In this document: one piece after another, positions 1 through 55,058 of the stretch
Layout of the letters: each line of letters begins with the position of its first letter
Numbering within the stretch: the stretch's first letter is position 1
Source of the DNA: Macrostomum lignano
Taxonomy: Eukaryota
Assembly (NCBI GenBank): GCA_002269645.1
Contig: NIVC01003789.1
Span: forward strand, 62,001-126,000
Reading direction: 5' to 3'
Length of the DNA: 64,000 bases
Position numbers and translations under genes: made by a program
Notes under the pieces: generated by a model
What the model saw: the letters and a program-made list of their open reading frames with translations, nothing else
The model's database searches: none
Told to the model about the DNA's origin: nothing

Positions 1-2246
1 ATTTATCGCGATTGAGCAGCAGAAGCAGCTGCTGCGAGGAGGCCTGCGAGACGCTTAGCTCATCAAAGAACAGACACCTATGAATGCCCAGGCGCAGACC
101 GTCGAAGGCAAAACCCTCGTCAAGGTTCGGAGTGAATACGGTCTCACGACCAAAATGCAGGCCCACCATTGCTGATTTGCCCACTCCACTGGCACCCCAT
201 AGGTACAGGATTGAGGGCACAACTACAGTCTGCCGCATCGCTGTGCAGATTGCCTGCTGAATCGCGCAGCTTCCACCTAGCGCGATGCGGTGTGTTGCCA
301 CATTGCTGCACCCCGGCTGATCCGTATTTGAAGCGGCTGTGTCGCCGCGTGGAGGCACCTGCATGCATTGTACAGGCAGAGGGTGACATGCCCCGCACAT
401 ACTCGGCCAGACAATGGTGCTGGGGAGCAGTGACACGCCGTGCTCTTCGGCACGAATTCTGCGCATCTGTTGCACCGTTGTAAAGTAATCCATGGTCTGC
501 TTCAAAAGCAGTGGATTACCGCAGACGAGATGGGGGTCGTCTGGTCGCGGTGCCATACTCCCCAGCGGATATGACATAGCCCATCTGTACAGTTGGACAA
601 CGCGGGACAGACAAGCGTCGTCGATTTCGGTGATGGCGGCTGTGGGGTCGTGCATGGTCACCCGTCATATTTCGGCAGCTGCTGAGCGCACGCTCCTGAT
701 CTCGGCGCATGTCCATCCCTGCACCGCAAAGGTGTGCAGGCTGGAGCCAGACGCGAAGAAGGAATTGTGCATGGCATTGGATCGCAAAAATATCAACAGC
801 GATCGTGTCTTGTCCACAGGGCAAGATGGAGTCGGGGCGTACGCGTCAGTCATGTGCGCGGGAGTCAGCATAAATTCGTTATCTGCCAGGCCTTATTACA
901 TACAGTAGTAGTAGTTGTTGTTTGTTGTGGTGGCGTTGGGGGATGGGTTAAAGAGTTTCTTAAAATCGCATGTTCTACGTAGAAGATAATTGTTATGAGT
1001 TTTTCAGACACTTGTGAAACGACGCAAACACTCACTCACTCACCTATGGCAAACTGTGTCGCGAAGTCGCCGCTCCAGGTGCCGTTGATCATCAGCTTCA
1101 TCTGGGGCGCGTTCTTGACGTAGTACAGCTGAATCACCGACATTGCACGATGCGAACGCCGGCTCGCATTAGCCGAAAACATTATGTCGTTTGGTATGGT
1201 GTCGCTGGGATGCAGCGACACGGACGATGCCAGAAGGCGCGAGCTCGTTCCCTTCGGCGAGGTGCTAGCCGGCTGCTGCTGCCGTTCCTCCCCCTCTTCG
1301 TGGAACAGTGGGATCTCGCCGGCCGGGCAGGTCGTCTCTGCGAGGTTATATTTAGCTGTCGCCTCCATCTCCCTGGCCGCCAGCTCGTAGCCAGAGGCCA
1401 AAGCCCGCTCGCGCTGCGTAGCACTCGACTGCGGTACGGCTGCGGCGGTGGCTCCTGTGTCGTCGGGAAACAACAATGTGAAAATGATACTACTGTAATA
1501 TGAGAGAATGTAGCATGAGCAAAAGTGTGAGCGCGAAATGCACGTAACCTACCTCTCGGGTAGAACGTCGTCGGCGGGCGGCTCGACCGAGGTCTCGGTG
1601 AGGCTGTCGGCGTCATGAATCGGAAGGCAGCAGTAGGAGCAGCAGGGCGAGTGGTGAAGCGCCAGGGCGCGCCGATGCCGCACGGGCCGATCCTAGGCTG
1701 CCGTAGAAGGTGCGGCTTCGGTGACGCTTGAGCAGCAGCGGCAGCAGAGTCAGTAGTATGGAATGAGGGCGACGCCTTCGGAATAAACTGCAGAGTCGGC
1801 GGCTGGTCGCCGCAGCCGGCGACGTGGTCAGCAGGATGCTGCTGCTGTTCGTCGTCGCTACCGCTGCTGTAGACAATTAATCGCGGCAGCTTGTTAAGCA
1901 AGCCGCGCTGCTGGCTTGGTTCCGGCGTCTCATTGGCTATGATGCGCCGAGAGGGCGTTGCGCTGCTCGTCTGCGGCGTGCTGACATCTTCTAATAGCAT
2001 CCGCCGGCGACTGGGTTGCTGCTCCTCATGAAAAGTAGTAACAGCAGCGGCAGTTTCCAACTCCTTCTCATGACAAGTAGCAACAGCAGCGGCAGCTTCC
2101 AACTCCTCCTCATGACAAGTAGCAACAGCAGCGGCAGCTTCCATCTGCAGTTGCTCCGCCTGCCGCTCTTCAGCAGCAACTTGTTCTTCGAGCTCGAGCT
2201 GCTCTTCCACACTTAACATTATCTCGTCGTCGTCGTCGTCGAACAT
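1..2246 (-). pseudogene. Spliced SF3 helicase gene (CRESS-Rep-like helicase domain with acidic leader), copy A; one internal stop; runs off window start
   Basis: Hand-built exons 2246-1553, 1454-1044 and 891-<1 with GT-AG introns in consistent phase 1. The last exon encodes YLWGASGVGKS (Walker A, ~177-210) and CLFFDE (Walker B, ~60-80). One in-frame TGA at 665-667. Clearly homologous to 29617-31973. Confidence 0.85.
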
Positions 2247-3353: not shown

Positions 3354-5060
3354 CTAATTGGTTTGAAATTGCATGAAGCAAGCACCAAGGCAGAGTGCTG
3401 GCGTTCCCGGGCAAGCTTCGCATACAAACACTGTCTTCTTCACTTGGCCAGCCGCATAGCATACTCGGCATCGTTTGCGTGGCCGAGCCTGGTCCCTGTG
3501 TCTGGGAGCTTTGCTTGGAGAATGAGCAGCAGCTCCATTGCCTACAGCACCGGCAGCTGCTCCATCTGGCATTCGACCGCGTCGCCTGGCAACACCAGTG
3601 TCCTCCAACAGATATTTGACTGCGAGCCTTATAAACTGCAAGAAGGTCTTTGTGCCGCCCGATTGCTTGAAGATGACCCAGGCATTTCTCACAAGCATCA
3701 GGAAAAGGTGGAACCCAAGCTTGTGGAACCAGCGCATGCTCTTACGATTGGCTAGGTAAGGGTGCATTGAAGCGTCCAGATGGTCAACACCACCCATGCT
3801 GGCACAGTATGCTAACACACTTACAGGCTTCGGCACCACCTGCACGGCACCTCCACGACGGGTACGATGGACCTGGATGCAATAAGCTTTTCCTGCTGTA
3901 TCTAGCAGATACACAGTTTTTATGCCGCTCTGCTTCCTGTCGACAAATTTGCAAGCCAGTAGGTTCCCTGAGCGAGCGAATGCAGATGAACTCGGATGTA
4001 GGTTGGCAGCTTGCAGTTCAGCTGGGATACCGCGGTTTTTCCGTACTGTTCCGGTTAGCAGCGTATCATGCTGCAACAGCCAAGTAGCCAGCCGCTGAGA
4101 CTTAAACCAACTGTCGGTCAAGACGTGGTGTCCAAGATTAAGCAAACTGCGGCACAGTTCTGCAACAACCTTCTCACTCATCGTCAAGTCCTGACACCCG
4201 AGGCCTTCACCGAACTGATTATTGACCTCAGGGAATGTGTGGACGACGAAGTTCCATAAGTACGCACTCTCACTCTCACAGATACAATACATTTTAATTC
4301 CGTATTTACTTTTCTTTGTTGGAATGTACTGTTTAAAAGCAACTCTGCCCTTGTACAAAACGAGTGTCTCATCAACCGACAGTCACTGCCGTGGCATGTA
4401 ATTGTTGCTGCACAGATGCTTTACGCTGTGCAGAAAGGGCTCCATCTTTGCCAGAGGGCCATCTCCTAAAGCCTCAGCGCAGTTGTAAAAACGCAGGCAG
4501 GACAGCAGCTGCTTGAAGCGGTCTCTTGAGAGCGAGAATGGCTTGGCCAGAAGGGAGCAATGAAACGCTGGATCGGTTGACCAGTAGTTGGCGATTTCCG
4601 GCTTCTTGTCGACACCCATCAAAAGCACGATTCCAACTAACGAACTTCATCCGTCGTTGAGTCCCGCCATTTCAACACTTGCTTCGGCAGTGCAGCCTCT
4701 GTTTCGGCTTCTTGAAAGATTCTCCAAGCCTTAGCATTAGTCCAATTGCTGAGGTCTTCGAACAACTGGTCTGAAAAAAAAGCTTTAGGAAAGCATCTTC
4801 GTTTCCATCAGCAGTTGGTGGAGGCTGCCAGTCTGGTCGGATGCCAGGTGTTCCGAGAAAATCGGGTAGGGCTGATGGCCTGTTGTCCTCATTCGGTTGA
4901 ACCATGTGCCACCCACCGGCTTGCTCGTTGTTCTCAGCGATGTCCATCTCATCGTCCTCAGACCATTCGAAAGTTTCATCAGCGGTGGAATACTGACTCG
5001 ACGAAGTATCAGAGTCGAAACTGGCGTCTGAATCTATGTATGTATATTTGCTTGAAACAG
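3354..5060 (-). mobile_element. piggyBac (PGBD-type) transposase, degenerate
   Basis: ORF 3354-4358 has YKGR..FKQYIPTKKSKYGIK, DSWF, GTVRKNRG, MGGVD and a C-terminal Cys-rich CRVC..CEAC..LC domain. Upstream fragments (4383-4628 YWST..SRDRF; 4672-4947) are broken by stops and frameshifts. TIRs and TTAA not resolved. Confidence 0.9.
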
Positions 5061-5811
5061 AAAATCTCTGTGCAAACTCTACGCGCAGGCAGTCAATAAG
5101 TATAAGTGAAGTCTATGTAGAAACTCTGTGGTACTTTAGAAACTTTTCCCGGCGGGAATGGGTGTGAGCATTACAAGAAAAAATTCTAAGAAAAAATAAG
5201 AATAGAAAAAATTTGTCAATAAACTTGCCCCGCTGTTGTAAATTCGGGCATACACAGTGTATATTTGGGCAGTCGTAGACTGTACATTGTATCCGGAAAA
5301 AGGAGGCAAAGCGGGCAGCCGTGTAATCGCGGGATGCGGTGAGTATATGCGGGCACGCTATAAAGAGACTGTATAGAAACACTATAGACTATAAGATTAT
5401 TGCATTGCATAATGTGGCTGCTATAATAAAAAAAGCGAGCGAGACATATGACACAGTAGCTAATATAACAATGTAAACGTTGTATATATAAATATAGACA
5501 TTCAATTAGAGCAGATAACAGAAGCACACAATGGGATGGGAGATAGCACAATCGCGGCACAGTGCCCAGCACAATTCCCGTTAAATATACGCGTAGCTAA
5601 GCGCAGCACAACTGTATTGTCTGACAGACAGCACTACTCACCGGCTATTAATTTAGGGGAATTGTGTTAGGCACCTTGCCGTGATTGTGCTAGCACTACA
5701 GCTACTATTGCTACTAGAGTGTTAAAAGAACAAAAGTAGGTGCACACTACAACTACTACAGTGTACTATAACTAGAATTAGTAGGCGGCTGAGGTGAGGC
5801 GAGGCAGATAA

Positions 5812-5851
5812 GAAATTGTGCTTGGCACCGGAGGTGCCAAGCAGCAATTTC
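5812..5851. repeat. Palindrome GAAATTGTGCTTGGCACC-GGA-GGTGCCAAGCAGCAATTTC downstream of the tyrosine recombinase, copy A
   Basis: Near-perfect 18/19-bp inverted repeat with one bulge; homologous to 24828-24865. Confidence 0.9.
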
Positions 5852-6210
5852 AAATCTGCCTGTGGTAATTAAGTACACACTAGCTATAGAGCGTAAAAAC
5901 AGCAAGAATCGGGGACTGGCAGCTATTTATGGCCAATAGATTGTAGCTATACAATCAGTCAATAGCTGATAGCCTGTGTGGATAATAGGCGTAGGGGTAT
6001 ATGATGCTGAACGCGGATGTTACAACAAAATAAATAGCCAACTATCTAGACAAAGAGGGAGCAAACACAACCTGCACCACGCGTAGTGCAACCACCACAG
6101 TGTCACATCGAGCGTGCAATGAAACATAGGGAGAGAAACAGCAACGACACATACATAAAAGGAGACGGCTTCCAAAGGTCAGACACATGCCTGTCGCAAA
6201 AAGTCGCTTA

Positions 6211-7768
6211 TTAGACAGAGGCCGACACGCGGCACAATTTAGGTTTCTTACTGCCGTTGCGTCTGGCTTTGCAGCCGGACGTCGCCGCCGCCGCATCGGA
6301 CCAGTCGAACTCCGCCGCAGCCGCCGCCGCTGCACTGGACAGCAACAAGGAGCGCGTGGCGTCCACAGCAGCCCGCCGTTTCGACGCGAGTTGCGGCACT
6401 GCAACCACCTCCGAATGCCGCTGCTGTTGCTGCCGCTTCTGCGACATTGGCTGCTGCCGCTGCTGAGTCGGCAGCTCCTGCGAGACCCGAGCGGCGATCA
6501 GCTCCCGCTGCTGCTGCTGCTGCTGCTTCTGGGACGTTGATGCTGCCCGCTGCTCAATCATTCCGCTGACGGTGACCTGCATTTCTGTACGACTGGCGAG
6601 CACAGCGTTCGGTGCGTAGTGTCGCATAATCATGGTTGTCGAAGTCTCATACAGCGCCGCCATCTGCTGTATTAGATCAGGGTTGTTCGCCATGACGACG
6701 TCCTGCGTCGAGCTGCGGAACACAGTTGGCCCGACGCCTTCCCGATGTAGGATGCCAGCTGCTCCGGATTCCACAGCGTGGCTGAATGTCGACGGAGACA
6801 TACGCGTGCCATTGCGGGTGCAAAATACAAAGACCTCGTCATCATAGGCGCAGTTGCCGAAGCTCGCGCCTCGACGCCACTTGCGGAGCATCTCGACAAA
6901 AGAAGTTGGCAGACAGAGCACGCTGCAACCGACAGACTGGCGTTTCTTGTGGCAAAGCCTATCATTGTCCCGCCTATAGATGCTGTTTGGCTCCAAATAG
7001 GCCAGGCGAAGGCCGCACCATGGCTGGATGCGCAGAGGATGTTGTACCGTGGCATGCAGCGCAAACCGATTGCGCAGCTGGACCTCCTCAGCGTTAAGGC
7101 GGACACCGCCGCTGCCGCTCAGCGCCGCGACAGTTTCGTCATCGTCTTCGTCATCTTCGTCAACCTCGATATCGCCAGACTCGTCGCCGTCACCGCCGCC
7201 GCCGCCGCCGCCGCCGCCGCTGCTGCCGCCGCCGCCGCTACATCGGCACAACCGATGGGTTAGCAGCAGCGGACTCCAGCCGTTGACGCTTCGGCTGCAG
7301 CGCTGTCGGGGCACTGGTGAAGGCCTCCTCGTCGGCGAAGAGTTCCAGCTTGATAGTAGCCGCGACCGAGCTTCCTTCGTTGAACGAGTCATCTTCATCA
7401 CTGCTGGAAGGCACCACGACGTTTGACACCTTCGTGATGACGCATTCATCGTCCGCGGCTGCGTTCGATTCGGCCTGGGTCGCTGGCGCGAGCACGACAG
7501 GTAGCACTTCCGGCGCCGCCGTAGCAGCCGCCTCAGCAGCGCTGCAGGCAGCCAGAAGTTCCGCGTCGAAGAAGACGTCTTCTTCGTCATCGTTAGCCGT
7601 TGGCTGGTTTGATTCGGTGGCGGCAAGATCGGCTGCAGTCGCCATCAGGTCGGCATCTTCAGCTGCATAGGCAGCTTCGAAGGCCGCATCGATTTCCGCA
7701 TCGGTCAAGGGGTACCACACGACCGAGTTGTTGCTGTTGTTGCTGTTTTTGTTGTTGCTATAGCTCAT
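6211..7768 (-). pseudogene. Tyrosine recombinase (catalytic domain present, core-binding domain apparently deleted) with acidic leader, copy A
   Basis: ORF 6211-7626 contains HPLR (Arg I), HKK (Lys), FVFCTRNG, PTVFR (Arg II) and TSTTMIMRHY (Tyr nucleophile). The acidic leader ORF 7238-7768 joins through a frameshift near the GCC repeat. Compared with copy B it lacks the zinc fingers and core-binding region. Confidence 0.8.
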
Positions 7769-10960: not shown

Positions 10961-12226
10961 TCGACACACGCCATCTGCAAGCGTATTAGAGGATGCGCGT
11001 TTTGTGAAATCAGTAACATTACAATGTCTATACAAGCAGTATGTTAATAAATGAAAGCTAATTACGCGTACGCCGTGAATAATTTCATCGAATGTCTGTT
11101 GGAGCAACTGGACGGCGACAGGGTCTTCTGGGTTAACAGATGCGGCGGCCGCAGGAGCGCGATCCTGGCTGGAAGTTGTGTGCGCTGCTGCTGCGGCTGT
11201 GATTGTCTCGTCGTCAACGATGTCACCGTCGACGTACAGCAGCCCTGTGCTGTAGACGGCCATAAATTCTCATGTTTGAACAGCCAACGCTCTGGGCCGC
11301 TTCAAACAGTGATCGGCTCGGTATTGGTCAGCAGGTTTTGTTAAGCTCTGTCAGGCTCTTTCGGCTGTTTTGCTGTGCAAATGCCTGATGTGGTCGAGTT
11401 ACACGGACCATCATTAGAAGATTCTAGTGCAGCTGCATGGCTAAGCTGTTTAAATTTTCATTGGTCAACTGCGTTTTGCAGTAGATTGCAGACGCTGAAA
11501 TTGCAGGATACATTTATCGTCGGATTGAACTCACTGTATTGTAAGTAATGTGATGCACATACAACTGATAATAGTACGACTAAAGTAATAAAAAGACTAT
11601 TTAAGTAAAACTGTAGCTAAAATATGCAGAATGTATGACTACATAGGTTATAAGGGCAGATGGCACCGTTGGCGACGGTTAAGTAGTTTAAAAATGCAAG
11701 CAATTTAAAGATTGATGTGTACTGTTGTAACATACAGTAATATTATTGTGCATTGTGTCTATGAAATTGCACTCAATGCGTATTATTCCTATGGCGAATA
11801 CCTGCTGCTCCTTTTATGTTGCGTGTTTTGCTATTATGCTTTGTAAGCAGGAGTGGGTGCATAGGAGCTGAAGAGATACAAGACAGAACATGGCCCCTGT
11901 AGCATAAAGTGTATCTGTTGTGGATCCAATTTAAAAAAAATTGATATACGCGCCATGACCCTTTAATATACGCGCTAGTGTACCTACTACTGAGACTACC
12001 AATATTAAAACGATAAGAAATAAATGAAAGCTAAACGCAGCAGAAAAGGTAAATTTGTAACTTTACTTGCGCCAACTGCACAGGATTTTCACGATAATAT
12101 GAAGGAGGGGAACAGCATTTACTTAAAAAAGATACCCTCCTCCTTTTTCAACCGGGCTTGGGACGGCTTTGGCTTTTACCCATCCACCTCGTATTCTGTA
12201 TCAACTGTTCTAGACTTGATCGAAGC

Positions 12227-24220: not shown

Positions 24221-24827
24221 ACTGCGTCGCTATCCGTACTGACTTACCTCATGCTGCTTACGTTTGCTGTTTTTTCATATTTGTCTAAAACTTGATAAAG
24301 CCACGTTAAAGCGAGCGTTAAAGTGTCAACCCCAGCCTGTATATGGACATTCAATGTTATCCTGCCGAGTGCGTTAATGTGGGCCATAGAGAGTGCGTGA
24401 ATGCGGTTGCGGCCATAGACAAAAAGAGTAACTATGTTTTATCATAGAACTTGAAACATAGAGGAGATTGAATACATGTATATTATGACTGAAGGTGGTG
24501 TATACGACAATTGCAAACCAAGCAATTATATAGAAAAAGAGTAATAGCACAATTGCGGCAGTGTGCGTAGCATAATTCCCTTTAAAGAGTATATAGATAT
24601 AGATATGTATATGTACCTGTAGCTGGTACTTATAAAAATGGCTGGCTGGCTGGCTGGCTGGCTGGAAGGCTAGTGGCTATATTTTCAGGAAATTGTGCTT
24701 AGCATAATTCCTAAATAGTGCGCGACATACCAGCTAGATAGATAGCAAGCAGCAAGTAAAAATTATCAATATGCAATTGCACAGCTATTTCAATATAGTT
24801 ATAAATGCCATGCAACATTGAGCGCTA

Positions 24828-24865
24828 GAAATAGTGCTTGGCACCTCGGTGCCAAGCACTATTTC
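24828..24865. repeat. Perfect palindrome GAAATAGTGCTTGGCACC-TC-GGTGCCAAGCACTATTTC
   Basis: 18-bp perfect inverted repeat with a 2-nt centre, flanked on both sides by AGCGCT; homolog of 5812-5851. Confidence 0.95.
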
Positions 24866-25260
24866 AAAGCGCTTTGAACCCTTCAACCTGCAGCCATGTC
24901 CAACCAACCAGCCGACGAAGTAGTAGCTACTGCTAATATTAAAACCAACACTATACGACTATAGTCTAATAAACGCTAGGAAAAATGTTATAACAATGGG
25001 CACGTAAACAATAAGAGAAAGGGATAGAACGCATAACAACGCGCGCAATATGAGGCGCAGATGCATTGTAATTATGAGATGAAAATATTGAAAAATATTG
25101 GGGCCAACATACATATAAAGGAGAGATGAGACAGTTACAACAAAAAAGAGAATCATCTACATTTCACTATTACTAATTAATTCAGTTATGTTAATAGCAG
25201 CACTTATTAATTAATTAATTTACCTCAAGAGACACTCTAAGTTTGCATAAAAATTTGCAG

Positions 25261-25436
25261 CAATGGTAAAGCGCACATTTACTAGATTTCATATAATGGT
25301 AAAGCGGTATTTAAAGTTTTAACGTTGTGGTAAAGCGGCCAACAGTTGAAATTTGCAGACAATGGTAAAGCGGTACTATTTAAGTTTAAACGTTGTGGTA
25401 AAGCGGCAAACAGTTAAAATGGTAAAGAGGCGGTAG
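25261..25436. repeat. Array of RTGGTAAAGCG motifs (iteron-like)
   Basis: Six near-identical motifs about 25-35 bp apart, with a ~66-bp higher-order duplication. Confidence 0.8.
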
Positions 25437-25471
25437 ACGCGCAGCATGCCTTGAAATTGATGCTTGGCACC

Positions 25472-27420
25472 TACCCACAATGTCCTGCTTGGAGCTCCGA
25501 AAAATATTCGGGCAGACGCCGGAACGACCGAGTATAGCTTTGGCATGATCGACAACCGCCTGGCTGAAGGTGGAAATGGACATCCGCTCACCTCGGTTGG
25601 TGCACAGCACAAACGGCGAGTTGGCGACGCCGACCATGTCGTTGCAATGACGGCCGTTTCGCCAGGTGAGCAGCAGCTCAATGAATGCGGTCGGCACTGT
25701 GAGAACGCTGCAGCCGACAGACTTTATTTTCTTATGGCTGACCTGGCGACCAGGCAGCCGGATGGTCGAATAGCCGTTGTCATGATTGTCGCGCCGACTG
25801 GCGCTACCCGGCCGGATGTGCGCTATGCGGAGACCGCGCCATGGCCGGACGCGCAGCGGATGCATCGCAGTGGCATGCAGAGCAAATCGATTGCGCATCT
25901 TAACAAAGCTGTCCTCGTCGGCTGGACCAGAGGCGACCAGTGCGGCGTAGTCGTCCAGGATGGTGCGCCACTCCACCGGGGTTAACAGCTTCTCTTTCTT
26001 TCTGTCGTGGTGCAGCGGCGCATCCAGCCTATACTCAAGGTCGTGCGCTGGCGAATAGTTTTGAGCCGCTACTGAAACAGCTTGCACCTGTTTTCCAGCT
26101 CGGCTGCAATGTCGGCCGGCAGTTGCATGCGCTCCACCAGCGATTGAAGATGCGCGCGGTCGTGCTCAACGTAGGCTTGCATGTACTGCATGCATTTTAT
26201 TAGCGCTTGCGCCCTGTTTCTAACTGTGCCGGAGCTATTGCTGGTGGCTCGAACCTCCGTTGCGGCGGTCGTTGGGTTGGCTAAGCAACAGACTAAATCT
26301 CGCGGCCTCGACGACTGGACAGCTCTTGTCGGCGGCGCCGGCTGCTGCTGCTGCTGCTGCTGTCATCTTTGAGCAGACCGACAAGATCAGCAAAAAGGTG
26401 TCAATGAGAGCGTCAAGATGGCCGTCATGGGCTGGGTTGCGCACGCCTGTTGCATCGTTCCAATACAATGACTGGATTACACGCAGCTGCTTTATCAGCG
26501 GAGCATCGGCCGAATACTGCGCCAATAGCGAAGAATGCCGCAGTGTAATCACAGCCAAGGCATCACGCGCCGCGATCGCCTCCTTGGCTGACATGGTCGT
26601 CGTCTTTGTCGTCGTCTCCGCTGCACCGCCGACGCTGACTGCCGCAGTCGAAGACGCGCTTGTCGCCGCCGTCACCGCCGCTACACCGCTGGCACCCGCC
26701 GCGATCGCCTTCTCGGCTGACATGGTCGCCGACGCCGCCGCCGCTGCACCGCCGCTGCTTACTGCCGCTGCCACAGTCGAAGACGCGCTTGCCGCCGCAG
26801 ACGCCGCCTCCGTTGCTGCACCGCTGGCACTGTCATTGTCGTTGACGATGTTGACGGGTTGATCACCAGATGGCATAATGACGTGGTGGCAGAATATTCT
26901 GTCAACTTAGCGCCGGCGGCGACCAGTTTTGCGTGCTTAGCGGCATGTTTCGTTGCGTCTCGGTAATAGCAACGACAGTCAGCGCAGTAGGTCTCGCGAC
27001 GGACTCTCTTGACGCTGACGCTGCTACTACTGGCACTGCTGCGGTCTCCTGTTGGGCGCAAAATCAGGCTTCGCCACAACCAGGTAGTGCGCCTGTCCAG
27101 CGTCCAGTCGTCTGTCGTCGCGTCGTCGCCGCCATCGCCTACCGGCTGCTCCTTGATCCATGAGACATGTTTCGCCGCAAAGTGAGTCTTCAGGGCGTCG
27201 ACACGCATCACGGCGGTGCAGTCCGGCACAGGGCATTTTCGAGCGTAGCGGATATTTCTGTTCTGGTTCGGCTTCTCGACAACCGACGGCGGCGGGGCAT
27301 CTGCAGCAGTGGCGGCGGTGGTGTCGAAGCCAGCAGCTGCCGAAGACTCGCTTGCAGCGCTTTCTGTGTGTGTGCGGATGGATTGTGTATTGATATCGAA
27401 ATCAGTTTTTGCTGCTTCAA
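25472..27420 (-). pseudogene. C2H2 zinc finger plus tyrosine recombinase gene, copy B; frameshifted; lacks the C-terminal Tyr segment
   Basis: Fingers CPVPDC..LKTHFAAKH and YCADCRCYYRDATKHAAKH; core-binding-like SGTVRNRAQAL (~26230-26100); catalytic HPLR, HKK and CPNIFRSS. Homology to copy A ends at QDIV (~25475). A possible 5' exon lies at 27914-27746. Confidence 0.8.
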
Positions 27421-29616
27421 ATGCTGCTTCTTATTTAATAATAACTCCTATAATCAAAAACTAAAAACTACAAAACCTGTTGCTGCTGCTGGAGGAGACA
27501 AAACAGCTGTTGATGCTGATGACCGCCGCATGCCAGGAGAATTAGACATCACGGCCGAGTATTGGACGGGCCGAAAGCTGATAGGTCGCCGCTGTCTGCA
27601 GTGGTATTAAATGCAAAGTGAGATCGTCTTTTGTAAATTTAGGAAGGTCAACTTAACGGAGCCTAACCGACAGAGTAGCTTAGCTTATTAGAGAAAAATT
27701 GGAATAACTCTTCTTCTTTAAATCACATAGATCGTTAACAATCACCTGATACTGCTGCTGCTGCTGCTGCTGCTGCTGCGCTCGCTTCGTCACAACACAG
27801 GTCTGCTGCTGCTAATTCTTCAGCTTGATGGTGATCACTAGAGTGATGCGGAGGAGCTTCGAAATCGTTGCCGTAGCCGTCGCCGAAGAGGAGCCGCAGC
27901 AAACTGTCAAACATGATTTTATACGATTCCTTTATTATTACAGTCTTGAGCCTCTATAGAAAGAGCTGAGAGCTAATTGGCTAAGCTTTGTGAATTAATT
28001 ACTCTGTTTGGCTCAGTCAAGCTATTTTAAAAATTTAACTCCTTTTTCTTAACCTTTTATAAAGATAGTCTGAGAGAAGCTGGGACGAGAGGAATGGCCA
28101 TAGACAAAATATTCCAGTGTCTAAGGCCCACCTCAGTGACACCGCTTTAACGCAATTCAAAGCCCAGTCTGTACAAGCTGACGGTTTATAGACCGATCGA
28201 TCGATAATTTGGTTGGCCATAGACAGTTGCAGAAGATCTAAACTCAGAAAACCTCCCGTGTACAGGCTAAATCTTTAACACTGCCGCCGATTGCCGATTC
28301 TATTATAATGTATAGACTAGACTAATAATGGCTAATACAATTAAAGGCAGACAGGATTAAAATAACCAAAGCTGCAAATCCCATACAGTTATTCATTCGT
28401 CAAAAGATGACACAACAACTTTATGAAATTGAAAATTGATAATTTAAAAACATTGCTGAATATATGGATGGTCAGAATGTTGAAATGTGAAATTGTAGAT
28501 ACGCAGCAAAAACTGCAACAAAACTGGTTTCAACAACAACAGAGAAAAGCAGAAGAAACAACCATCAATCTGAATATAGAAAATCAATCGATCAATCTTG
28601 TAAAAACAAATCCACTTCCGGATTGCAACACCGTCAGTCCAAGTCATTAAATGTGTGAGTGCGTGCAGCCAAAGCTGTTGCCACACTACCCTTCTGTTAA
28701 GATGATAGAAAAAAATGTCTATTATATTTTTAGGCAATTCTGCTTGGCACAAATCCGAAATTGTGCTAAAGACCTATACGACCAGTCATTTTACGGCACT
28801 TGACTAGCATAATTGCGTCCCAATGCTTGGCATAATTCCTATAAAATAGTATACTTATATATCGGGGGCTATATCTGCATGCACAATATTAATTGTTTGC
28901 CGATAACTGTCGTCGCAGTCAATATGCATTTCACTGCTTTTATTTGCATTTGATGTAATCTATTTTAGGGCTACACTGCCTCTACATCACTGCTGTCTTT
29001 GATTTTGCGATTTAGTAGTAGCGATACTATTAGTCAGATAGAAGCACAAACCGCAGCTGCTGCTATTGAGACATCTATCTATCTTGATTGACAGGGAGGG
29101 AGCTGCTAACATGCTGCTGGCTGATGCAAACACACACAATATTAAAAAGATAGAACAGAACAAAAACTTGAATGCTGAAACAATTAAAGAGCCGCAGCTC
29201 ATATCGTATTCAACTAATAAAACTAGCTAATCCACTCTAGCCCTCCCTAACCGAGTATAATTATTTGTTAGATTTTAGATGCAACAACATTCGTTACCTG
29301 TGTGTGTGCTTGCGTGCGTGCGCTTTACCTTTTTTGCGACTGATGGACCTAGCGTGCGCCACCAATAACTTGTTTAACAACAACAACAACAACAACGTCT
29401 TTGATTTAGTAAATCTATTTTTGTAACTATGACAATTAACCTACTGCATAATCTTAGATGGGATTCTAATTTTGAGAAATTTTTGTGCTTCCGCTTATAC
29501 CTAATCTGTTATAGTCAACTTAAATTTTTTGATTCAGCATTCTTTTAATTAGTCTTTTTGGTCTATTGGCGGCGGCGGCGGCATCATCAGCGAACCCCAG
29601 CTAGCTGCCTGGCGAC

Positions 29617-31973
29617 CTAGACGTTGGCGGCGGCGTCCGCGGAGCCTTCCTGCTGGCAGCCAATGCATTCAAAGACGTTGTGCTCCATATGGAAGCACCT
29701 TCCACTGGCGGAAACGCGCCGCACAAAGTCAACTGGCAATTCTGCTGGCGGCACATGGCCCGCAAATATGATACTGCCGACCCATTCGCTCTGCACATGG
29801 GCCTTGTGCTTTGCGTTTATGACAAATTTATCCCTATTCATGAGCAGCAGAAGCTGGCCCTTTGCCGCCTGTACCGGCTGCAGTTCGTCAAAGAATAGGC
29901 ACTTGTGTATGCCTAATTTTAATCCGTCGAACGGAAAGGCTTCGGAGAGGTCCGGCGCGTAGACAGTCTCTCGGCCGAAATGTAAGCCGACCATCGCCGA
30001 CTTGCCCACTCCACTGGGGCCCCACAAATAAATTATTGCTGGAACAGCCAGTCCTTGTCGCATGGCTGTGTAAATTTCACGCTGTATTGCACAGGCGCCA
30101 CCAAGCGACAGTCTGTGTGTTGTTGTTGCTACGCAACGACGCCGCATTTAATGTCGCCTTCGACGCCACGACAGCTGGCAATTGGCAGACGCCGCACATG
30201 CTTGGCCGTACCAGATTGGCCGGCATGGGGCTGATGCCTAGCTCCTCCGCCCGGATGCGGCGCATCATCTGGACAGAGCTGAAATAGTCCAGCGCCTTCT
30301 AAGCAACAACGGATTGCCGCACACTAGCTGCGGATCGTCGGGCCTCGGCTGCATACAGCCCAAAGGGTAGGACATGGCCCACCGATACAACAACACATTC
30401 CTGGACAGGCAGCCGTCGTCAATGTCCGTGACGGCTGCTGTCGGGTCGTTAAGTGTCACGCGGCGTATCTCCGCGTTTGCACTCCGTGCACTCCGGATCT
30501 CAGCGTTTGTCCACCCTTTAACGGCGAACGCGTCCTCGCTGGACCCCGACGCAAACAGGCTGCGCAGTCTGCCTATCAGATCTACTGTGCTATGTAGAGC
30601 ATTGGTGCGGACAAAGACTAGCACAGACTTGGTGCCAGCTATTGGACAGCTGGCAGTCGGGGCGTATGGGTCAACCATATGGGTTGGAGATAGGATAAAT
30701 TCATTCTCCGCTAAGCCTATAGTTTTAGCATTATTTAAGTCAATGTTGTTGTTGTTGTTGTTTTTAATTATTGGTTGGTTTGGCAATTTTAGTTTTTTGT
30801 CGGGGATGGGGTGGGTGTGTGATTAATTTAAAATGGTGCGCAAAAAATCGCAATAATACTCAGCTACATGATTGTTTTTTCTACCAAACCAAGATACATG
30901 CATGCAAAATATGTATGTATATGAAAGCGTTTTTACTCACCAATTGCCAGTTGTGCCGCGTAACTGTTGCTCCATGCGCTGTTCAGCAGCATCTTGAATT
31001 GCGGCGCGTTGCGGACATGGGAGAGCTGGACAACGGACATTGCCCGGAATGCCCTTCGGCTTGTCTCGGCCGCGGCGGTGACGCTCCGGGAAACAGCCTC
31101 GGCCGGATGCAGTGGCACGCGTGGCGCCAGGAGCCGCGATGTGGTGCACTTTGGTTGCTGTTGCTGCTGCCGATGGTCGTCCTGCTGTACACCCAGTGCC
31201 GATGCAGCGTCATCGGCATCAGACGACAAACTGTTATTGGCGCCGTCGTATCCAGCTGTTGCCTCATGGGCGGCCGCAGCCATCGAATATACTGCTGCTG
31301 GTTCTGTCGCAGGCGACAGCGGATGCGGAGCTTTGAATATAGGTTCAGCAGCATAACTTGAAGCAGCAGCAGCTTGTCGACGTTGGTCGCTGGTAAACAA
31401 CGAGTATGATTTAACGGACGGTGACGGAGTCCTTGAAGCCGCAAAAGCGAATCGAGCCGCTGTCGTCGATCCCGCAGGTTGGGCGAAGGCGAAAGGCCTG
31501 ACTCCGACTGCCGCCCCGATGATGCGCGGCTGCCGTTTCAGTGCTGGCTTTGGTACTGTTGACGACGCTCCACTATTGCTGGAGGCAGCGGCGGCGTCCC
31601 TATCGGTGGCGATGCACTGCACCTTGGCCGCCGGAGACTGATGTTGCTGTTGTTGGCTCGGCAGTTCGCGTTTCAACGATTGTTGAGAGTGCATCTGTGC
31701 CGGTTATGTCTTGTAGGCAGAGCGAATCGGCGTGTCAGCATCGTCGTCGTCGCTGTCCGGGACGACGATGCCCGTAATGGTGCAATCGGCATCGACGTCA
31801 GCGTCGTTGGTATTCAGCGCCGGTGGCGGCGATGAAGCTGGGGTGTCTGCGGCGAACAGAGATGCCGCCTCCAGTTCGGCGAACGCCTCCAGTTCGGCCT
31901 CTTCGCAGGCAGCCAGTAGATCATCGTCTAACACAAAGTCGTCATCATCGTCAGGAAAATTGTTGGTTGCCAT
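29617..31973 (-). pseudogene. Spliced SF3 helicase gene, copy B
   Basis: Exon 31973-30941 (in-frame TAA at 31704), phase-1 GT-AG intron 30940-30717, exon 30716-29617 with two frameshifts. Motifs: Walker A GPSGVGKS, Walker B LFFDE, motif B' VINAKHK, motif C IIFAGH, Arg finger FVRR. Confidence 0.85.
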
Positions 31974-33149
31974 TATTCGCGATGAAGCTGACTACAGAGC
32001 TGGAACGGCGGGCTGTCTTTTAATGGATGGATCATTATTATGCCTTGCACACTGTTTTCTGTTCCTGCTTTTCTTTCTTTCTTTCTTTTTCGGGTCACGG
32101 ACATTGTAGCTAGACGTAGCTAATAGGACCGGGGGCGTAGCCCCATGCAGCCGGGGCGCTGACCCTGCGCGGGCGGGCAGTAGACGGCGGAATCCAATTT
32201 GCGGCCTGCGGCGGGTGGCCAGAGAGCGTGGGGACCCGAGTCCCGGTGCGCAGGGCTCCTCCGCAGACCGACTTACGCTGTAAAAACCGCCATCCACCGC
32301 CAACCCAACGTTGGGGGACAGCTCTCCCAGGCTGCATACCCGGAGGTGAGACCAATTCGTCACCCCGTCGATGGCAGGGACGCACGGAGCTCCTGCCACA
32401 TTGGCGGGGTGTCCAGGGGCGCGACGTGGACGCTGGTCTCGTGCCACCCTCTGTTCCTGCTGCTGCTGCTGCTGATGCGATATACATTAAGGAAAAAGTG
32501 CTGCTAGGCTATAGCTACTGATTATTTGTCTATGGTAGAAAGACTCAGTTTGAGACTAGCTAAAGCAATATATATATATTTTTTAAGGGAAAAATGCTAG
32601 GCACAGCTGCCGCGTTGTGCTATTAATAACATTTTTATACTAGGTAGTCTATGGCATGGCGTGTGAGTAGTGACTGACTGCCGCATTAACGCACTCTACC
32701 GCTTTAACACACTCGATATCGCTTTCACGCAGGAGCCGAATTAACGTAGCCGCGTTAACGCAATTTTTACCGCTTACACTCAGAAGCATATTTGTCAACG
32801 TTTGTTTAAAGCTTCCTAACTAGGTAAACTAATTGTAAGGTATAGCAATCTGACCCTAACCTGCCTAATAATATTACCGTTAGTAAATAACAACTGTGTT
32901 TTACGTTTGTTATGACAACAATAAACGTTTACCGTTTTTTCTTACTTGTCGTCGTATATTTAAAGCATCGTAACCACGTAAACTAATTGTAAAGTAACAA
33001 TTTGACTGTAACGTAAGTAACAATATTAACAATAACAAGTAACAAGCGTGCTTAGCAGTCCGAAAACCTATAATAATCTTTATATTGGCCCCTAAAGTTG
33101 CATATACGAAGCAGACGCATCCCGGAAGTCGCTTGTGTGCTGTTGCATC

Positions 33150-33553: not shown

Positions 33554-34834
33554 GTCCGTCTGCTTTCAGCCGTATACAATATACGAGCTATGCTAGAAAT
33601 TAGCTAAATTAATATTACTACAGGACGAAAATACAACAGTTTCGTAGCTTCAGAGTTGATAGAAAATTAACCTTTCGGCTGACGTTTGTATATAACTAGT
33701 CGAGCATCTGACGAAATATTTTTCAGCAAAGACGTAGAAGTGCTTAGCTCTGTAGTCATTAGATCGTCCAGCAAGTAGCATTTGTCACCTTTTGATGGAA
33801 ATACATAAGCGACGTAATGACCTTCGTCGACTCGTTCTCCCAGGTGCACAATAACACTTTGGAGGCAATAGCGCCGATTGTTATAGTCAATTTCTGGCGT
33901 AAAATCGAAGCCCACTCGGTTCTTGACAATAGTTGCCTGGCTTCTCAAGAGCCTGTTCACGACTAAGCACAGGAGAGGTGGCGCATTTTGAGGAGTTCTG
34001 CTATGAACGCAGCTACTTGTCTGACAAGCTGTGCATGTGATGTCATCAGACTCGTCGGGTCGTAGTGCCGCATTCACAAGCTGGATCAGCTGCTGTCCTT
34101 CAACTGGTTGAACCACCACGAATGTTTCATGCGAACTTTCAGTAGTCGCGGCATTATTGCACCGGAGACAAAGGTTGGACCCGCCGAGCTAAAATAATAA
34201 AGACAAACAGCTGAGACGGAATTGAAAACATCGATTTAAAGGGCCTGTACTCTCTTACTGCCATCTATGCTGTATGTGACCGATCCAGGATTCATATTTG
34301 TTTACATGTATTTGACTCTTTTTACTACATTAGTTCCCTATGATAATTGTCATTTCAAATGGTTTCCGTTCAAAAGTAAAGCAAGTTTCTGTAAGTGTTT
34401 TTGAAATTTAGATACGAGCGTATTACCTGAATTCTAAACTGGCGACGAATAGTCTGCAGCTATTGAGAAATGAGCACGAAAAATTCAAAGCAGTCGTTAT
34501 ATTCGTTGGTATTTATTTGACCAGCCGTACAGCATTCTTCCAATGCAGTGTTGTACAAATCTTCGCTGAATCCAGATCCGCTCGAAATGTTGGCCAAGAG
34601 TCGTATAAGAAAGGACGAATTCACTGCTGTTTCAGAAAAATTTCTCCCTGACAATGCCGCACCAACTGCGTGAAGACTGGCGTTGAACCAACAGAGTTTT
34701 CCATTACGATTGGGTAAGCCGAATGGACGATAGCCTGATGTCGATAGCGCCGAAGCTTCGACAGTAACAAAACTGGCGACATGATCAGAACAATCAACAA
34801 AAGCATGAGCGGCTGGCTAGTTTATCACTGTTGG

Positions 34835-35915: not shown

Positions 35916-38900
35916 TGTTGTGCTTTTGGCTTTTAGCCTTTAGCAATTGTCACTAGCGGTCTGCTGACCTCTGACGCGTCTATTATTTATTTCATAACTC
36001 AATAGCATGGTTCAATTCATCAACGCAGTCGCGTAACAAAAATGTCTATGGCAAAGCCATCAACCCACAACACCCTCCCTCTTCTATAGGTAGGTGTACA
36101 ATTATCACTCAGGTGCGATAAAAAATTCTAGTTTTCTTGGCCAAGCGTTCGCTTCGCCTGGGTGACGGCTTGGATTGAACTCCAACCTCAGTCTGTTGCT
36201 GTTGTGCTCTCTCAGCTTGTTCTGTTCCCGGTAGTATCTCAGTGTCTGTCGATGACGGACGCGTCTGTTGGCCGTCGTCACTTGGACCGTTGCCACCGGG
36301 CTTGGAATCCCCCATTTCCCTAGTTCCGTGAGCCTCAGGTACCTCACCGATTCGTAGTTGATCGAGGTGGGTCTTTAGATTTCGTCCAGTCTCTGTGGTG
36401 ACGACTGCTGTGTTGCTGCCAAGCATTTTGGCGAATCTCACAGTTCGTGGCTCATGAGAACTCGATGCACGGTAGATGAGTGATTCTTCTGGGATCCACT
36501 TGGACTGAGTGCTGCTCTCCGAGATGGGGAGTCTTATTTGTCTGCCGTTCAACAACTCGGACGGTGATGCTTGCTGCTTCCCTTTGGCAGCTCTGTAGAA
36601 CAGTAGAAATCTGTCAATACTTCTTTGGGATAAACCATTGGTCTTGATTGTCTCTTTGACGGTTCGCACCATTCGCTCTGCAATGCCGTTGCTCTGTGGA
36701 TGGTAGGCGGGCGTTGTGATGTGCGAACAGCCAATCTGGGTGAGCCAGCCGGTCACCGCTTCGCTCACAAAACTAGGGCCGTTGTCTGACACGAGACACT
36801 TGGGCACCCCCTGTTGTGAGAACAATCTTCTAAGTCTGGAAATGACTGTGTCGGCCTTCATGTCGCTCGTGATGAAGACTTCCGGGTAGCTCGAGTGCGC
36901 ATCCACAATTATGAGTAGGTACTTGCCCTCTATCGGACCGGCAAAATCAATGTGCACTCGCTCCCAGGGGTTGTCAGGTTCTGGCCACGAGTGCCGAAAG
37001 TTCTTATTTCTGGACTTGTACGCGTTGCACACGTTGCATCGTCCAATGTAGTCAGCGATGTCACGGTCCATCTGTGGCCACCAGAACTGTTCCCTCAAAA
37101 TTGACTTTGACTTTTCCACCCCAAGGTGCGTTGAGTGTACAGCTGCCAGGGCAGTTTCTCTCAGGACACGAGGCAATACAATTCTGTTCATTCTGTAAAT
37201 AATTCCATCATTGACAGTTAGCTCATCTTAAACCTTCGAGTAGCCGAGTAGGTGTGGGTCGTCAAATAGATTATTGTTAATTATGGCTGCGCCCAGGCAT
37301 CTGAACTCCGGGTCCTCTCTGGTTGCGTGTGCAATGCGATCCAGCTGAATTACTCCCGGGTTGTCAGCTTCGAGGAGTCCGATCGATGCTGTCTGTGCAT
37401 TCGGCTTAGCGGGCACCAGTCGAGATAGCGCATCCGACAGCATTAGCTTTGATGGTCGATACTGTATGACATAGTCATAAGCAGCTAGCATGATTGCCCA
37501 TCGTTGTAGTCGAGCTGAAACTCTGGTGGGCAGCTGTTTGTCTGGCGCGAATATGTATGTGAGGGGCCGGTGATCAGTTATCAGTGTGAACCTCCGGCCA
37601 TACAAGAACCGATGGCATCTTTGAATGCACCAAACCAGTGCCAGGCCTTCACGCTCTATTTGCGAATATTTTGTTTCGGCGTCAGACAGAGTCTTGCTCA
37701 TGTACAGCACGACTTGACCGCTTTGTGTCAACACTCCGCCCAGAGCTCGCTGAGAACTGTCGCATTCCAGTTCAATGGGCTTCTCCGGATCAAATATTTG
37801 AAGACTCGATTGATCAGAGAGAGTGACCTTGATTTCGTCAAATGCTATTTGACACTCCTTTGTCCACACGAAGTCCTCATTTTTCTTTCTTAGTCGATTG
37901 ATAGGCTTGGTCAGTGCAGCTAGGTTTCTGATGAACCTGCCGCTAAAATTTACGAGACCCAGGAAAGATTCAAGCTCGCCAACGTTCTGCGGTGGTGTCA
38001 TGTCCTGGATTGCCTTCACTTTGGCTGGGTCCGGCTTGAGCTGATCTCCTTCCAATAAGTAGCCTAGAAACTTGATCGAAGTCTTGCGGAATTCACTTTT
38101 CGCCGTGTTGATCTTCAATCCTTGCTGGTTTAGTCGATGCAATACTTCTGTCTCACGAACTGCCAATTGTTCTACGCCTTTGCCGCATATCAATATGTCG
38201 TCTACGTAGGCAATGACGCCAGGAATTCCTTGTAGGACTTGGCTAATGTACCGCTGGAAGATCGCAGGTGCTGTTTTCACTCCGAACGGAAGCTTGTTGA
38301 AAGCGAACATCCCAAATGGTGTTGACATTACTGTCAGCTCTTTGGAAGCTTCATCTAGTGGGATCTGGTGATAAGCTTTCTCTAGGTCCAGACGAGTGTA
38401 TATCCGGCTGCCAGCAGCAGTTGCAATCACTTCGTCAGGTGCAGGCATCGGATATGAATCGTTGATAAGATGAGAATTGATTGTCACCTTGTAGTCGACG
38501 CAAAGTCTGAGCTTTCCAGAAGGTTTCTTGACCACGACAATTGGTGAGGCCCATTCACTGAACTTGACGGGCTTGATGGTGTCTTCTTCAAGCAACCGAT
38601 CGATTTCATCCTTGACTTCCTGTCTGAGTGCGAAGGGTAGCGGCCTGGGTTTGCAATGAATTGGAGTGGTTCCTTCCTTGATCTTAAGAGTTACTGGTGG
38701 AAATTCGCATGACTGGGTTGCCGATGTGCAGCTGTTGTCTACAGCGTTTAGCGTGAAATTGAGCTTGTCTCGGCCAACCAGAACAAACTGCGATTCCACA
38801 ATGAAGAATGTGATTGGAATGAACTCGTCATTGTACTCCAACTCAGTGTCGTGTGTTCCAAAGACCTTCATCTGCGTATCAGCGTATGTTGTCAGAACAG

Positions 38901-40249
38901 TGTCTGTAGGTGTCAGTTTTGGACAACCCAATCGTTTCCAGATCGTTTTTGACATTACCGAAACTCCTGCCCCAGTATCGATTTGTGCGTTCACGCTAAG
39001 CATCGACCCGCTCGTGTGTCTGAGCCTAACAGGCACGGTGTAGCTATCAACGGGATGTCGAATGTGAAAACAATCCTCCTGTTCAGCTTCGCTTGCATCT
39101 ACAAAGCTTGTGGTCCTTGGGCACACTGCAGCTCGCCTAAATTGACCAGATGCTGACGGGCTTTTGAACGATTTTCGGCCTTTGCCAAAACCAGTTGATT
39201 TCGTTTTGCAAACTGTTGCGAAGTGGTTTTGCATGCCACATTTGTTGCACGTTTTTCCTTTCGCAGGACACCCTCCATTGGAGCCATGCATTGTGCCACA
39301 TCTGCCACACTTGGAGCTTGTAGAATGGGAGCCTCTGGTCACCGATGCTGAAATTTTCATTACTTCAGAAGACTGCGGCTGACTGGTGCAACCCTTTAGT
39401 ATTTGCGTTTGTGATAGGTTCTGGTGCGCCTCAGCGATGTTGATAGCTGTCTCAAACGTGAGAGTGCTGAAGTCCTGTTCCAATAACTTGCTGATGGCCA
39501 CCTTGTCATTCAAACCGAATACGAGCTGATCTCTCAGTCTCTCATCTCTGGATAGGCCAAACTGACACTTGTCTGCCTGCATGCAGAGTTGCTGTGCATA
39601 CTCACGAATGCTCATTGATGCCGTGCGAGTGATATGCTGGAAATTGAATCTCTCAGCCATGACGAACGTCTTTGGTTCCAGGATGCTGGCCAGTAGTTTG
39701 GTCAGTTCATCGAAGCTCTTTTCTCCCGGCTTCTTGGGAGCGGCTCGGTCTGCCAATGCGTCGTACAGCTTGGTGCTGAGCTTCATCAGCAGCAGCTTGT
39801 TTTTCGTGTCGTCCTGCCAGCCGTTGAGTTCGCTGCACAGTGTGAATCGGTCCAACCACCTCTGGAAGTTCGAACTTTCATCGAGTTTTTCGATGTCAAC
39901 TTGCTGTCCTCTCGATACTTGTGCGCTTGGGTTCTGCGCTGTCGCTGTTGCCGACTTTGTCGCTTGGACTGATTTCGACGAGATCGCAAGCGGTGGTGCT
40001 TTGTCGCTCGAAACCGTTTTACCAACTCCTTTAGTTGGCGATGCTGGCGTACTTCCAGGCATTTTCGTAGCCTATGCTTGCCGACGCCACTGTTGTGCTT
40101 TTGGCTTTTAGCCTTTAGCAATTGTCAGTCTAGCGGTCTGCTGACCTCTGACGCGTCTATTATTTATTTCATAACTCAATAGCATGGTTCAATTCATCAA
40201 CGCAGTCGCGTGACAAAAATGTCTATGGCAAAGCCATCAACCCACAACA
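35916..40249 (-). mobile_element. Full-length Ty3/Gypsy LTR retrotransposon with short LTRs
   Basis: LTRs 35916-36072 and 40091-40249 (TG..CA, few differences), 5-bp TSD ATTCT, PBS TGGCG next to the 5' LTR, PPT at 36073-36084. Confidence 0.95.
36109..40062 (-). CDS. Gypsy gag-pol polyprotein (CCHC, protease, RT, RNase H, integrase) with one premature stop
   Basis: IDTGAG protease, YVDD RT, RNase H ECDSS..DALSR, integrase HHCC and D,D-35-E. ORFs 37228-40062 and 36109-37191 are in the same frame, separated by one TAA plus 12 codons. Confidence 0.92.
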
Positions 40250-54800: not shown

Positions 54801-55058
54801 AGCCTGGATCCAGACATCAAAGTCCTGGTTCGGAGTGTACCGCTGAATCTTGACCGGTTTCGGCGCTGGAGCTCAGTCAGGCTGTTGGGGCGGCTGATAC
54901 ACGTGGTGATGGTGCTGCAGCTGTCCCAAGTCGCCGTCGCACCTCTTTGGTCACTGCTCGAATCATCTCGTCGTAGGTTGGCCTAGTAGTTGAGTTGTTG
55001 GGGCCCGCGGTGTCGGCTGTCGCATCCGCGGTCGTTGAGTTAGTTGTCGAAGCCATGA
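51850..55058 (-). pseudogene. Gypsy gag, split by a LINE insertion
   Basis: Gag-like 54291-54770 (EYREQFRCCQQGKNESVDDY), polyQ interrupted at 53880/52114, CCHC knuckle CYRCNREHHADEC at ~51990-52030. Confidence 0.8.
52114..53880 (-). mobile_element. 5'-truncated I-group LINE (RT C-terminus, RNase H, zinc motif) with (CAA)n tail
   Basis: Begins at FADD and contains FLGLTYDRRLTF, YTDGS, ISDSQS, WVAGH..GNEAAD and CRAC..EH..C. Stop at 52131 directly followed by (CAA)n; (CAG)n on both flanks. Confidence 0.92.

Follow-up and report, generated by a model that had tools for sequence, protein, structure and literature searches.

A putative Rep-derived helicase gene family with an apparently inactivated nuclease domain, a recombinase-like neighbour and conserved palindromes in the flatworm Macrostomum lignano

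Polyomaviruses and papillomaviruses are proposed to have arisen from single-stranded DNA viruses, the key step being that a Rep lost its nuclease and kept its helicase; to our knowledge, such a loss is so far known only from these two groups. The replication proteins of both combine an inactivated HUH domain with an SF3 helicase, and the inactivated domain is the origin-binding domain (PMC6668415). Other Rep-derived proteins are resident in eukaryotic genomes. Helitrons encode an active two-Tyr Rep with a fused helicase domain, and Replitrons encode an active one-Tyr Rep, which has no helicase and is reported from plants, algae, and protists (PMC10288648). Described Cryptons, DNA transposons of animals and fungi, have a tyrosine-recombinase gene as their only core gene and no reverse transcriptase, and they are without a helicase or ATPase (0 mentions in PMC3212892). 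A literature search found no description of a helicase gene, a recombinase-like gene, and a palindrome in the combination reported here.

The window, i.e., the whole stretch of 64,000 nucleotides of M. lignano DNA that was analysed, holds two copies of a helicase gene. A retrotransposon protein from the window, looked up by exact match, assigns it to contig NIVC01003789.1 of M. lignano assembly GCA_002269645.1. Copy A lies on the minus strand, starts with an ATG at 2246, and exits the window at base 1, directly past Walker B. Copy B is the same gene with a complete 3' end. The two copies are laid out as follows:

1..2246, minus strand: copy A, putative Rep-derived helicase gene; three predicted exons, one in-frame stop, cut by the window edge after Walker B
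2246-1553, minus strand: predicted exon 1 of copy A
1455..1552, minus strand: candidate intron 1 of copy A; 98 nt, phase 1, AG/GTAGGT...ACAG/G
1454-1044, minus strand: predicted exon 2 of copy A
892..1043, minus strand: predicted intron 2 of copy A; 152 nt, phase 1, within a Gly codon, G/GTGAGT...AG/GC
891-2, minus strand: predicted exon 3 of copy A
29617..31976, minus strand: copy B; one in-frame stop and two frameshifts
30717..30940, minus strand: predicted intron of copy B; 224 nt, phase 1, G/GTGAGT...AG/GC, splitting the Gly codon that intron 2 splits in copy A

Joined unaltered, the three exons of copy A form a reading frame of 665 codons, a single one of which is a stop, and the introns between them are of the phase-1 GT-AG type. 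An earlier note on this DNA, made from the sequence alone, had read the gene in the same way, with three in-phase exons and a single lesion, and the conserved N-terminal strings that it quoted are all present. Copies A and B share 44% amino-acid identity across approx. 450 amino acids and approx. 70% within the ATPase part. The note had also described an intron common to both copies. The same Gly codon is indeed split in the two genes; however, the junction reads AIG-LA, with one Gly and not two. Intron 2 of copy A and the intron of copy B differ in length and are not alignable, and their splice sites mark the limit of DNA and protein similarity between the copies. The GC content of the introns in the two copies is 32-42%, and 32-39% for the shared intron, compared to 56-62% in the exons. 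In their sequence features, the introns of copies A and B look like real spliceosomal introns. The support for intron 1 is weak because it has no counterpart in copy B, being found in copy A only; its consensus signals, the dip in GC (0.42 compared to 0.60 in the exons), and the restoration of the conserved frame by its removal make it a plausible intron.

A third M. lignano paralogue (locus L002, protein P0001) carries a phase-1 GT-AG intron of 78 nt. The metagenome relative L003 has an uninterrupted, intronless ORF of 465 residues that reads straight across the L002 intron junction, which validates the L002 intron. The idea that this intron is the one found in copies A and B was rejected: a global profile alignment sets it approx. 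20 codons upstream, and identity is unproven. All three M. lignano copies examined (A, B, and L002) are broken.

The helicase family is rare, and its distribution is very patchy. When 1.84 billion representative proteins were searched exhaustively by profile, only 13 hits emerged, which comprise eight family members (clusters) and five HUH-SF3 Reps or Rep fragments. One paralogue has been annotated as a gene model. The nearest full-length relatives, P0009, P0010, and P0012, are Reps of 368-432 residues encoded on contigs of 2.1-2.6 kb; each combines the full set of three nuclease motifs with a downstream SF3 helicase, and a collection of viral contigs contains relatives of P0009-type Reps on contigs of 2.57 kb. 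Scans of the collections for relatives of the helicase family itself in metagenome contigs or viral contigs found none. Word-indexed protein searches gave no match with copy A and only P0004 with the family alignment, and searches of all pieces against Pfam, PHROGs, and NCBIfam gave only generic P-loop matches.

The helicase part of copy A that falls within the window lies in predicted exon 3:

2..292, minus strand: predicted SF3 ATPase part of copy A; contains Walker A and Walker B and reaches the beginning of B', with motif C beyond the window

The ATPase profile of the family matches the P0009-type Reps with an hhalign probability of 99.2% (E 3e-19, 138 columns), and the match spans from before Walker A to an Arg segment after motif C. 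The Rep helicase profile, in turn, matches the solved structures of AAV Rep40/Rep68 (E 9e-4 to 3e-3). Both comparisons support the claim of the earlier note that this is a virus-like SF3 helicase gene, and the family helicase is, as judged by profiles, homologous to the SF3 helicase of the HUH Rep lineage of small viruses. Direct matches of the family are weak (PF00910, E 0.006, with P0001; 9pqj, E 0.014). Walker A (GxxxxGK[ST]) occurs in both window copies and shows no variation among the 10 family sequences compared, and the D-E pair of Walker B is likewise invariant in 10 family sequences. An Arg or Arg-Arg conserved in the family, a candidate arginine finger, aligns with the N-R-L segment that follows motif C in the Reps. 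The Asn of the Rep motif C is replaced by His in three of six family sequences and by Val in the other three, so that the SF3 signature is incomplete at this motif; since this Asn is absent, the motor may not be a normal helicase.

The N-terminal domain lies upstream of the ATPase part:

443..1149, minus strand: N-terminal domain of copy A, spanning intron 2; putative inactivated HUH-endonuclease-like domain and linker

The profile of this domain was built from six sequences, namely copies A and B (exons joined unaltered), L002, L003, P0004, and L004. When aligned by hhalign with the N-terminal halves of HUH Reps, it scores 42.8 over 101 columns (P 1.2e-5); reversed controls score 9.7-11.3, and the maximum of 40 column shuffles is 17.2. 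A rerun that included two further Rep fragments gave a P of 2.3e-6 and a probability of 89%. The aligned block begins at the HUH motif, runs through motif III, where confidence is highest, and is collinear with the helicase match. MAFFT independently aligns motif III and its surroundings and pairs motif I with a conserved hydrophobic strand in exon 2; in the profile alignment, the motif I region, which makes up the first third of the nuclease domain, is not confidently aligned. The N-terminal halves of the Reps match solved Rep nuclease domains (7vg8, E 0.0065; 1l2m, E 0.0091) with motifs I-III aligned. Searched directly against solved structures, the N-domain profile of the family found no Rep structure. 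Moreover, the Viral_Rep and Gemini_AL1 Pfam models match no window piece, and only the distant hit P0013 has such a match. The AlphaFold models of the copy B ATPase ORF (pLDDT 34.6) and of the joined-exon N-domain (7-row alignment, pLDDT 36.5) are not usable.

The catalytic columns of the domain are occupied by other residues. Across the six members, the residues found are S, S, gap, T, E, and Q at His1; L, L, A, S, H, and K at His2; R, R, R, S, W, and D at the catalytic Tyr; and M, L, Q, Q, S, and S at the Lys of motif III (YxxK). Both HUH histidines are retained together in none of the six, and neither does any member have the catalytic Tyr. The earlier note had observed that candidate HUH histidines are not shared by both copies, and these columns bear out that the canonical HUH residues are absent. 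It had proposed either a derived or inactivated HUH/origin-binding fold or a new DNA-binding or primase-like domain; the alignments favour the former, and its wording of a domain 'in place of' an HUH nuclease would then not hold. Since the nuclease halves align and the catalytic columns are replaced, the N-terminal domain would be an inactivated HUH domain, a degenerate descendant of the nuclease and not a replacement for it. With its catalytic residues replaced, it is predicted to be a domain that cannot cut DNA in the known way.

Copies A and B have diverged under purifying selection in both domains. Third codon positions differ at 0.57-0.61 of sites, compared to 0.12-0.20 of second positions, and pN is 0.19 against a pS of 0.80-0.86; the N-terminal domain, with a pS of 0.86, shows the contrast as strongly as the ATPase does. 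Because pN is low while pS is high, both lineages appear to have been working genes for most of their separate history, with the breaks occurring late. This saturated synonymous divergence under selection fits the long residence in a nuclear genome that the earlier note had deduced from the introns. In addition, the dead nuclease domain is constrained as strongly as the motor and should therefore have a function.

Each window copy has a recombinase-like gene, here called Y, in its neighbourhood:

6211..7768, minus strand: Y1, tyrosine-recombinase-like gene; two overlapping ORFs in different frames, with one frame change, by an intron or a break
25386..27229, minus strand: Y2, second tyrosine-recombinase-like gene; 5' extent uncertain, similarity to Y1 lost before the C-terminal Tyr region

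Y1 and Y2 are 49% identical across 158 residues. At three of the three loci examined (A, B, and L002), a Y gene lies 2.4-4.2 kb from the helicase gene; at L002, a Y-like ORF is found at 4.2 kb (hhalign E 5e-5, probability 67%). The order and orientation of the two genes vary among the three loci, all of which come from one genome. A candidate reading in which two distant hosts carry the gene pair was rejected, as the window and L002 are both from M. lignano. In the PDB, the Y profile has two matches only, an integrase (E 0.076) and XerA (E 0.11); both are tyrosine recombinases, and in both the box II Arg is aligned. One Y copy also matches the phrog_1 integrase (0.0096). The catalytic Tyr of Y is three to four residues off the aligned position, and Y2 is without that region. 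The Y proteins match no Pfam or NCBIfam model, including DUF3504 and Phage_integrase, and a word-indexed protein search with the Y alignment found no match. Weak but consistent sequence evidence, with E-values of 0.01-0.1, points to Y as a tyrosine-recombinase-like protein. Moreover, the acidic N-terminal leader of Y1 resembles the leader of copy B (Smith-Waterman score of 100; maximum of 73 in 1000 shuffles), and BLASTP of the two leaders finds nothing after composition correction.

Conserved non-coding DNA is found 3' of both Y genes, where several blocks within approx. 330 nt are shared despite saturated synonymous sites:

5544..5854: conserved non-coding region 3' of Y1; two inverted 33-nt units and a long palindrome
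5544-5576 and 5660-5692: 33-nt units 3' of Y1, inverted relative to each other
5811-5854: palindrome 3' of Y1, long and conserved
24545..24868: conserved non-coding region 3' of Y2; one 33-nt unit and a palindrome
24545-24577: 33-nt unit 3' of Y2, counterpart of the Y1-side units
24827-24868: palindrome 3' of Y2, counterpart of 5811-5854
28736..28768, minus strand: 33-nt unit between copy B and Y2, in inverse orientation to the unit at 24545

In all, the window has four copies of the 33-nt unit, with none expected. Folded as a single strand, each palindrome has an energy of about -27 kcal/mol (z -10 and -9), and the arms have undergone paired (compensatory) changes between the copies, so that symmetry is kept. 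Selection seems to have preserved the palindrome region as a site that binds protein or forms a hairpin. At L002, neither the 33-nt unit nor the palindrome was found, and scans of public collections did not find the palindrome either. The DNA around the window copies is rich in transposons, including piggyBac-like and Gypsy-like elements. Searches for element ends, target duplications, and empty sites found none; a search for terminal repeats around L002 gave simple repeats and an inserted small transposon only. No capsid-like ORF was seen adjoining any copy in the ORF listing or with Pfam.

The best explanation, to which we give a little more than even confidence, is that the family encodes a Rep-derived origin-binding helicase of a recombinase-associated integrative element, the window copies of which are decaying. 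Within the same explanation, copy A would be a recently broken member of a small, old M. lignano gene family descended from an HUH-SF3 Rep of small DNA viruses. The dead nuclease domain would act as an origin-binding domain, by analogy with large T antigen and E1. It would recognise the palindrome and the 33-nt units, a binding that we purely infer, and would then load the helicase so that the double-stranded DNA is opened; the recombinase-like protein may insert or remove the unit. The earlier note had treated the gene as a lone endogenous CRESS-like gene and had overlooked the linked recombinase-like gene, the palindrome, and the repeat region, which point to a multi-part element and not to a simple viral fossil. 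A bolder version of the explanation is possible, though we hold it only tentatively: the two genes and the palindrome/repeat region would be parts of one animal mobile element of a class not yet described. In such an element, a Rep that has lost its nuclease would be the origin-binding helicase for double-stranded replication, and the tyrosine recombinase would have taken over integration; the step proposed for the origin of polyomaviruses and papillomaviruses would thereby have been repeated independently within a flatworm genome.

Polyomavirus large T antigen and papillomavirus E1 resemble the flatworm family in that their SF3 helicase is preceded by a nuclease-derived domain without the HUH and Tyr motifs (PMC6668415). 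As in these systems, the palindromic DNA near the family genes could serve as an origin, and the nearest Reps give weak Pfam matches to the papillomavirus E1 helicase (E 4e-4 to 4e-3). In contrast to large T antigen and E1, to which it has no significant sequence match, the family is chromosomal, intron-bearing, multi-copy in a flatworm, and linked to a recombinase-like gene; its motif C Asn is replaced, and no capsid genes were seen near the copies. With the CRESS-DNA virus Rep of the geminivirus type, it shares domain order and helicase motifs, but it is without the catalytic His and Tyr and the Viral_Rep Pfam match, it contains introns, and the circular genome context of 2-3 kb was not found for it. 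Among solved structures, parvovirus NS1 / AAV Rep40-Rep68 match the helicase of the nearest Reps best, which makes their link to the family an indirect one; unlike in these proteins, the nuclease of the flatworm family appears inactive.

Among the mobile elements, Cryptons are comparable in that the flatworm unit has a recombinase-like gene and no reverse transcriptase, and terminal repeats were not found around the helicase and Y genes. However, the flatworm Y gene is accompanied by a helicase gene, and its proteins match neither DUF3504 nor Phage_integrase. Helitrons and Replitrons share with the family the residence of a Rep-derived protein in a eukaryotic genome; in contrast to the active Reps of both, the flatworm proteins combine an apparently dead nuclease with an SF3 helicase.

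The main rival explanation, which we regard as rather unlikely, is a domesticated host family: an ancient captured Rep would have gained introns and a cellular role (in replication, repair, or antiviral defence), the window would contain two dead paralogues, and the neighbouring Y genes would be unrelated transposons. The introns and the long purifying selection would be expected of such a family, as would a paralogue that is an annotated gene model and the disappearance of the catalytic residues from every member, even the one with an uninterrupted ORF. On the other hand, every one of the M. lignano copies examined is broken, those of the window sit in transposon-rich DNA, and the distribution of the family is very patchy. 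The repeated linkage to a Y gene and to conserved palindromes also speaks against domestication, as does an N-terminal leader common to helicase and Y proteins.

Two further readings are each improbable. A plain endogenous viral element, i.e., a CRESS- or parvovirus-like Rep inserted once or a few times and decaying since without function, would agree with the stops and frameshifts and with the nearest full-length relatives, which are HUH-SF3 Reps on contigs of 2.1-2.6 kb, some of them in the viral collection. However, neutral decay would not yield a pN of 0.19 with a pS above 0.8, it would not create a shared intron, and it would not strip every lineage of its catalytic residues with the remainder of the domain still 73% conserved; a capsid-like ORF is also missing beside the copies in the ORF listing and Pfam searches. 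As improbable as this viral fossil is a new DNA-binding or primase-like N-terminal domain that is joined to an SF3 helicase and is not derived from a Rep, the profile match arising from the linker only. Much of the hhalign score does fall after motif III, the motif I region is not reliably aligned, a direct match to solved Rep nuclease domains is missing, and the model of the domain (pLDDT 36.5) gives no fold to compare. Against this reading, the alignment opens at the HUH motif, reaches its highest confidence at motif III, and is collinear with that of the helicase; MAFFT, independently of the profile, aligns motif III and sets motif I against the conserved exon 2 strand.

Under the preferred explanation of a Rep-derived helicase in a recombinase-associated element, the flatworm family would be a second, independent case in which the nuclease has been lost and the helicase retained. 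Since its nearest relatives keep an active-looking nuclease, while the family itself resides in an animal genome, bears introns, and has been under selection, it may offer a comparative handle on this switch. Moreover, if the link to Y and the palindrome holds genome-wide, the unit would also be a new type among the few known classes of eukaryotic DNA elements.

The helicase and tyrosine-recombinase-like (Y) genes share the window with the transposons, other ORFs and repeats listed below.

Transposons, other ORFs and repeats in the window
3354-4358, minus strand: piggyBac-type transposase fragment (DDE_Tnp_1_7, E = 6e-34), with its zinc finger
33667-34119, minus strand: ubiquitin C-terminal hydrolase ORF (UCH domain, E = 4e-11), upstream of helicase copy B
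36112-40062 and 47913-51158, both minus strand: two Gypsy-type pol regions, with reverse transcriptase, RNase H and integrase; an exact match of the first region assigned the window to M. lignano
44210-45367 and 54880-56308: segment duplication, with ORF pieces mostly 60-89% identical (range 39-100%)
58727-60383: group of ORFs with internal repeats, one of them containing DUF7486 (E = 2e-8)

The piggyBac-type fragment separates helicase copy A from the first Y gene, Y1, and its palindrome region, and was probably inserted later. At L002, the third M. lignano locus with a helicase paralogue and a Y-like ORF, the stretch between the helicase and Y genes contains a small element (11201-11922) that carries part of a transposase HTH and is bounded by perfect terminal inverted repeats of 48 nt. 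The relative on the metagenome contig L003 (1468-2862, plus strand) is an unbroken family ORF of 465 residues that comprises the N-terminal domain and a complete ATPase. No intron interrupts this ORF where the L002 intron lies, and AT-rich apparent introns are found upstream of it.

Two Cys/His clusters are conserved throughout the helicase family (window 29620-30147; family alignments A3 and A9). The first, a CxxC together with a C-x6-C pair, follows the N-terminal domain and precedes Walker A, and the second, an H...C-x-G-x-C motif, is C-terminal. Both clusters may be zinc sites.

Exon 1 of copy A contains a 44-nt direct repeat (window 2019-2146; 84 nt spacing, 89% identity), the product of which is an acidic, Ala-rich repeated peptide. 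Helicase and Y protein leaders (window 31710-31976, 7241-7768 and 1850-2246) have short hydrophobic runs with clusters of Ser, Asp and Glu after them, and the nearest HUH Reps (P0009-P0012) show the same pattern in their tails. By eye, these hydrophobic and Ser/Asp/Glu patches of the leaders and Rep tails look like motifs of the SUMO-interaction type.
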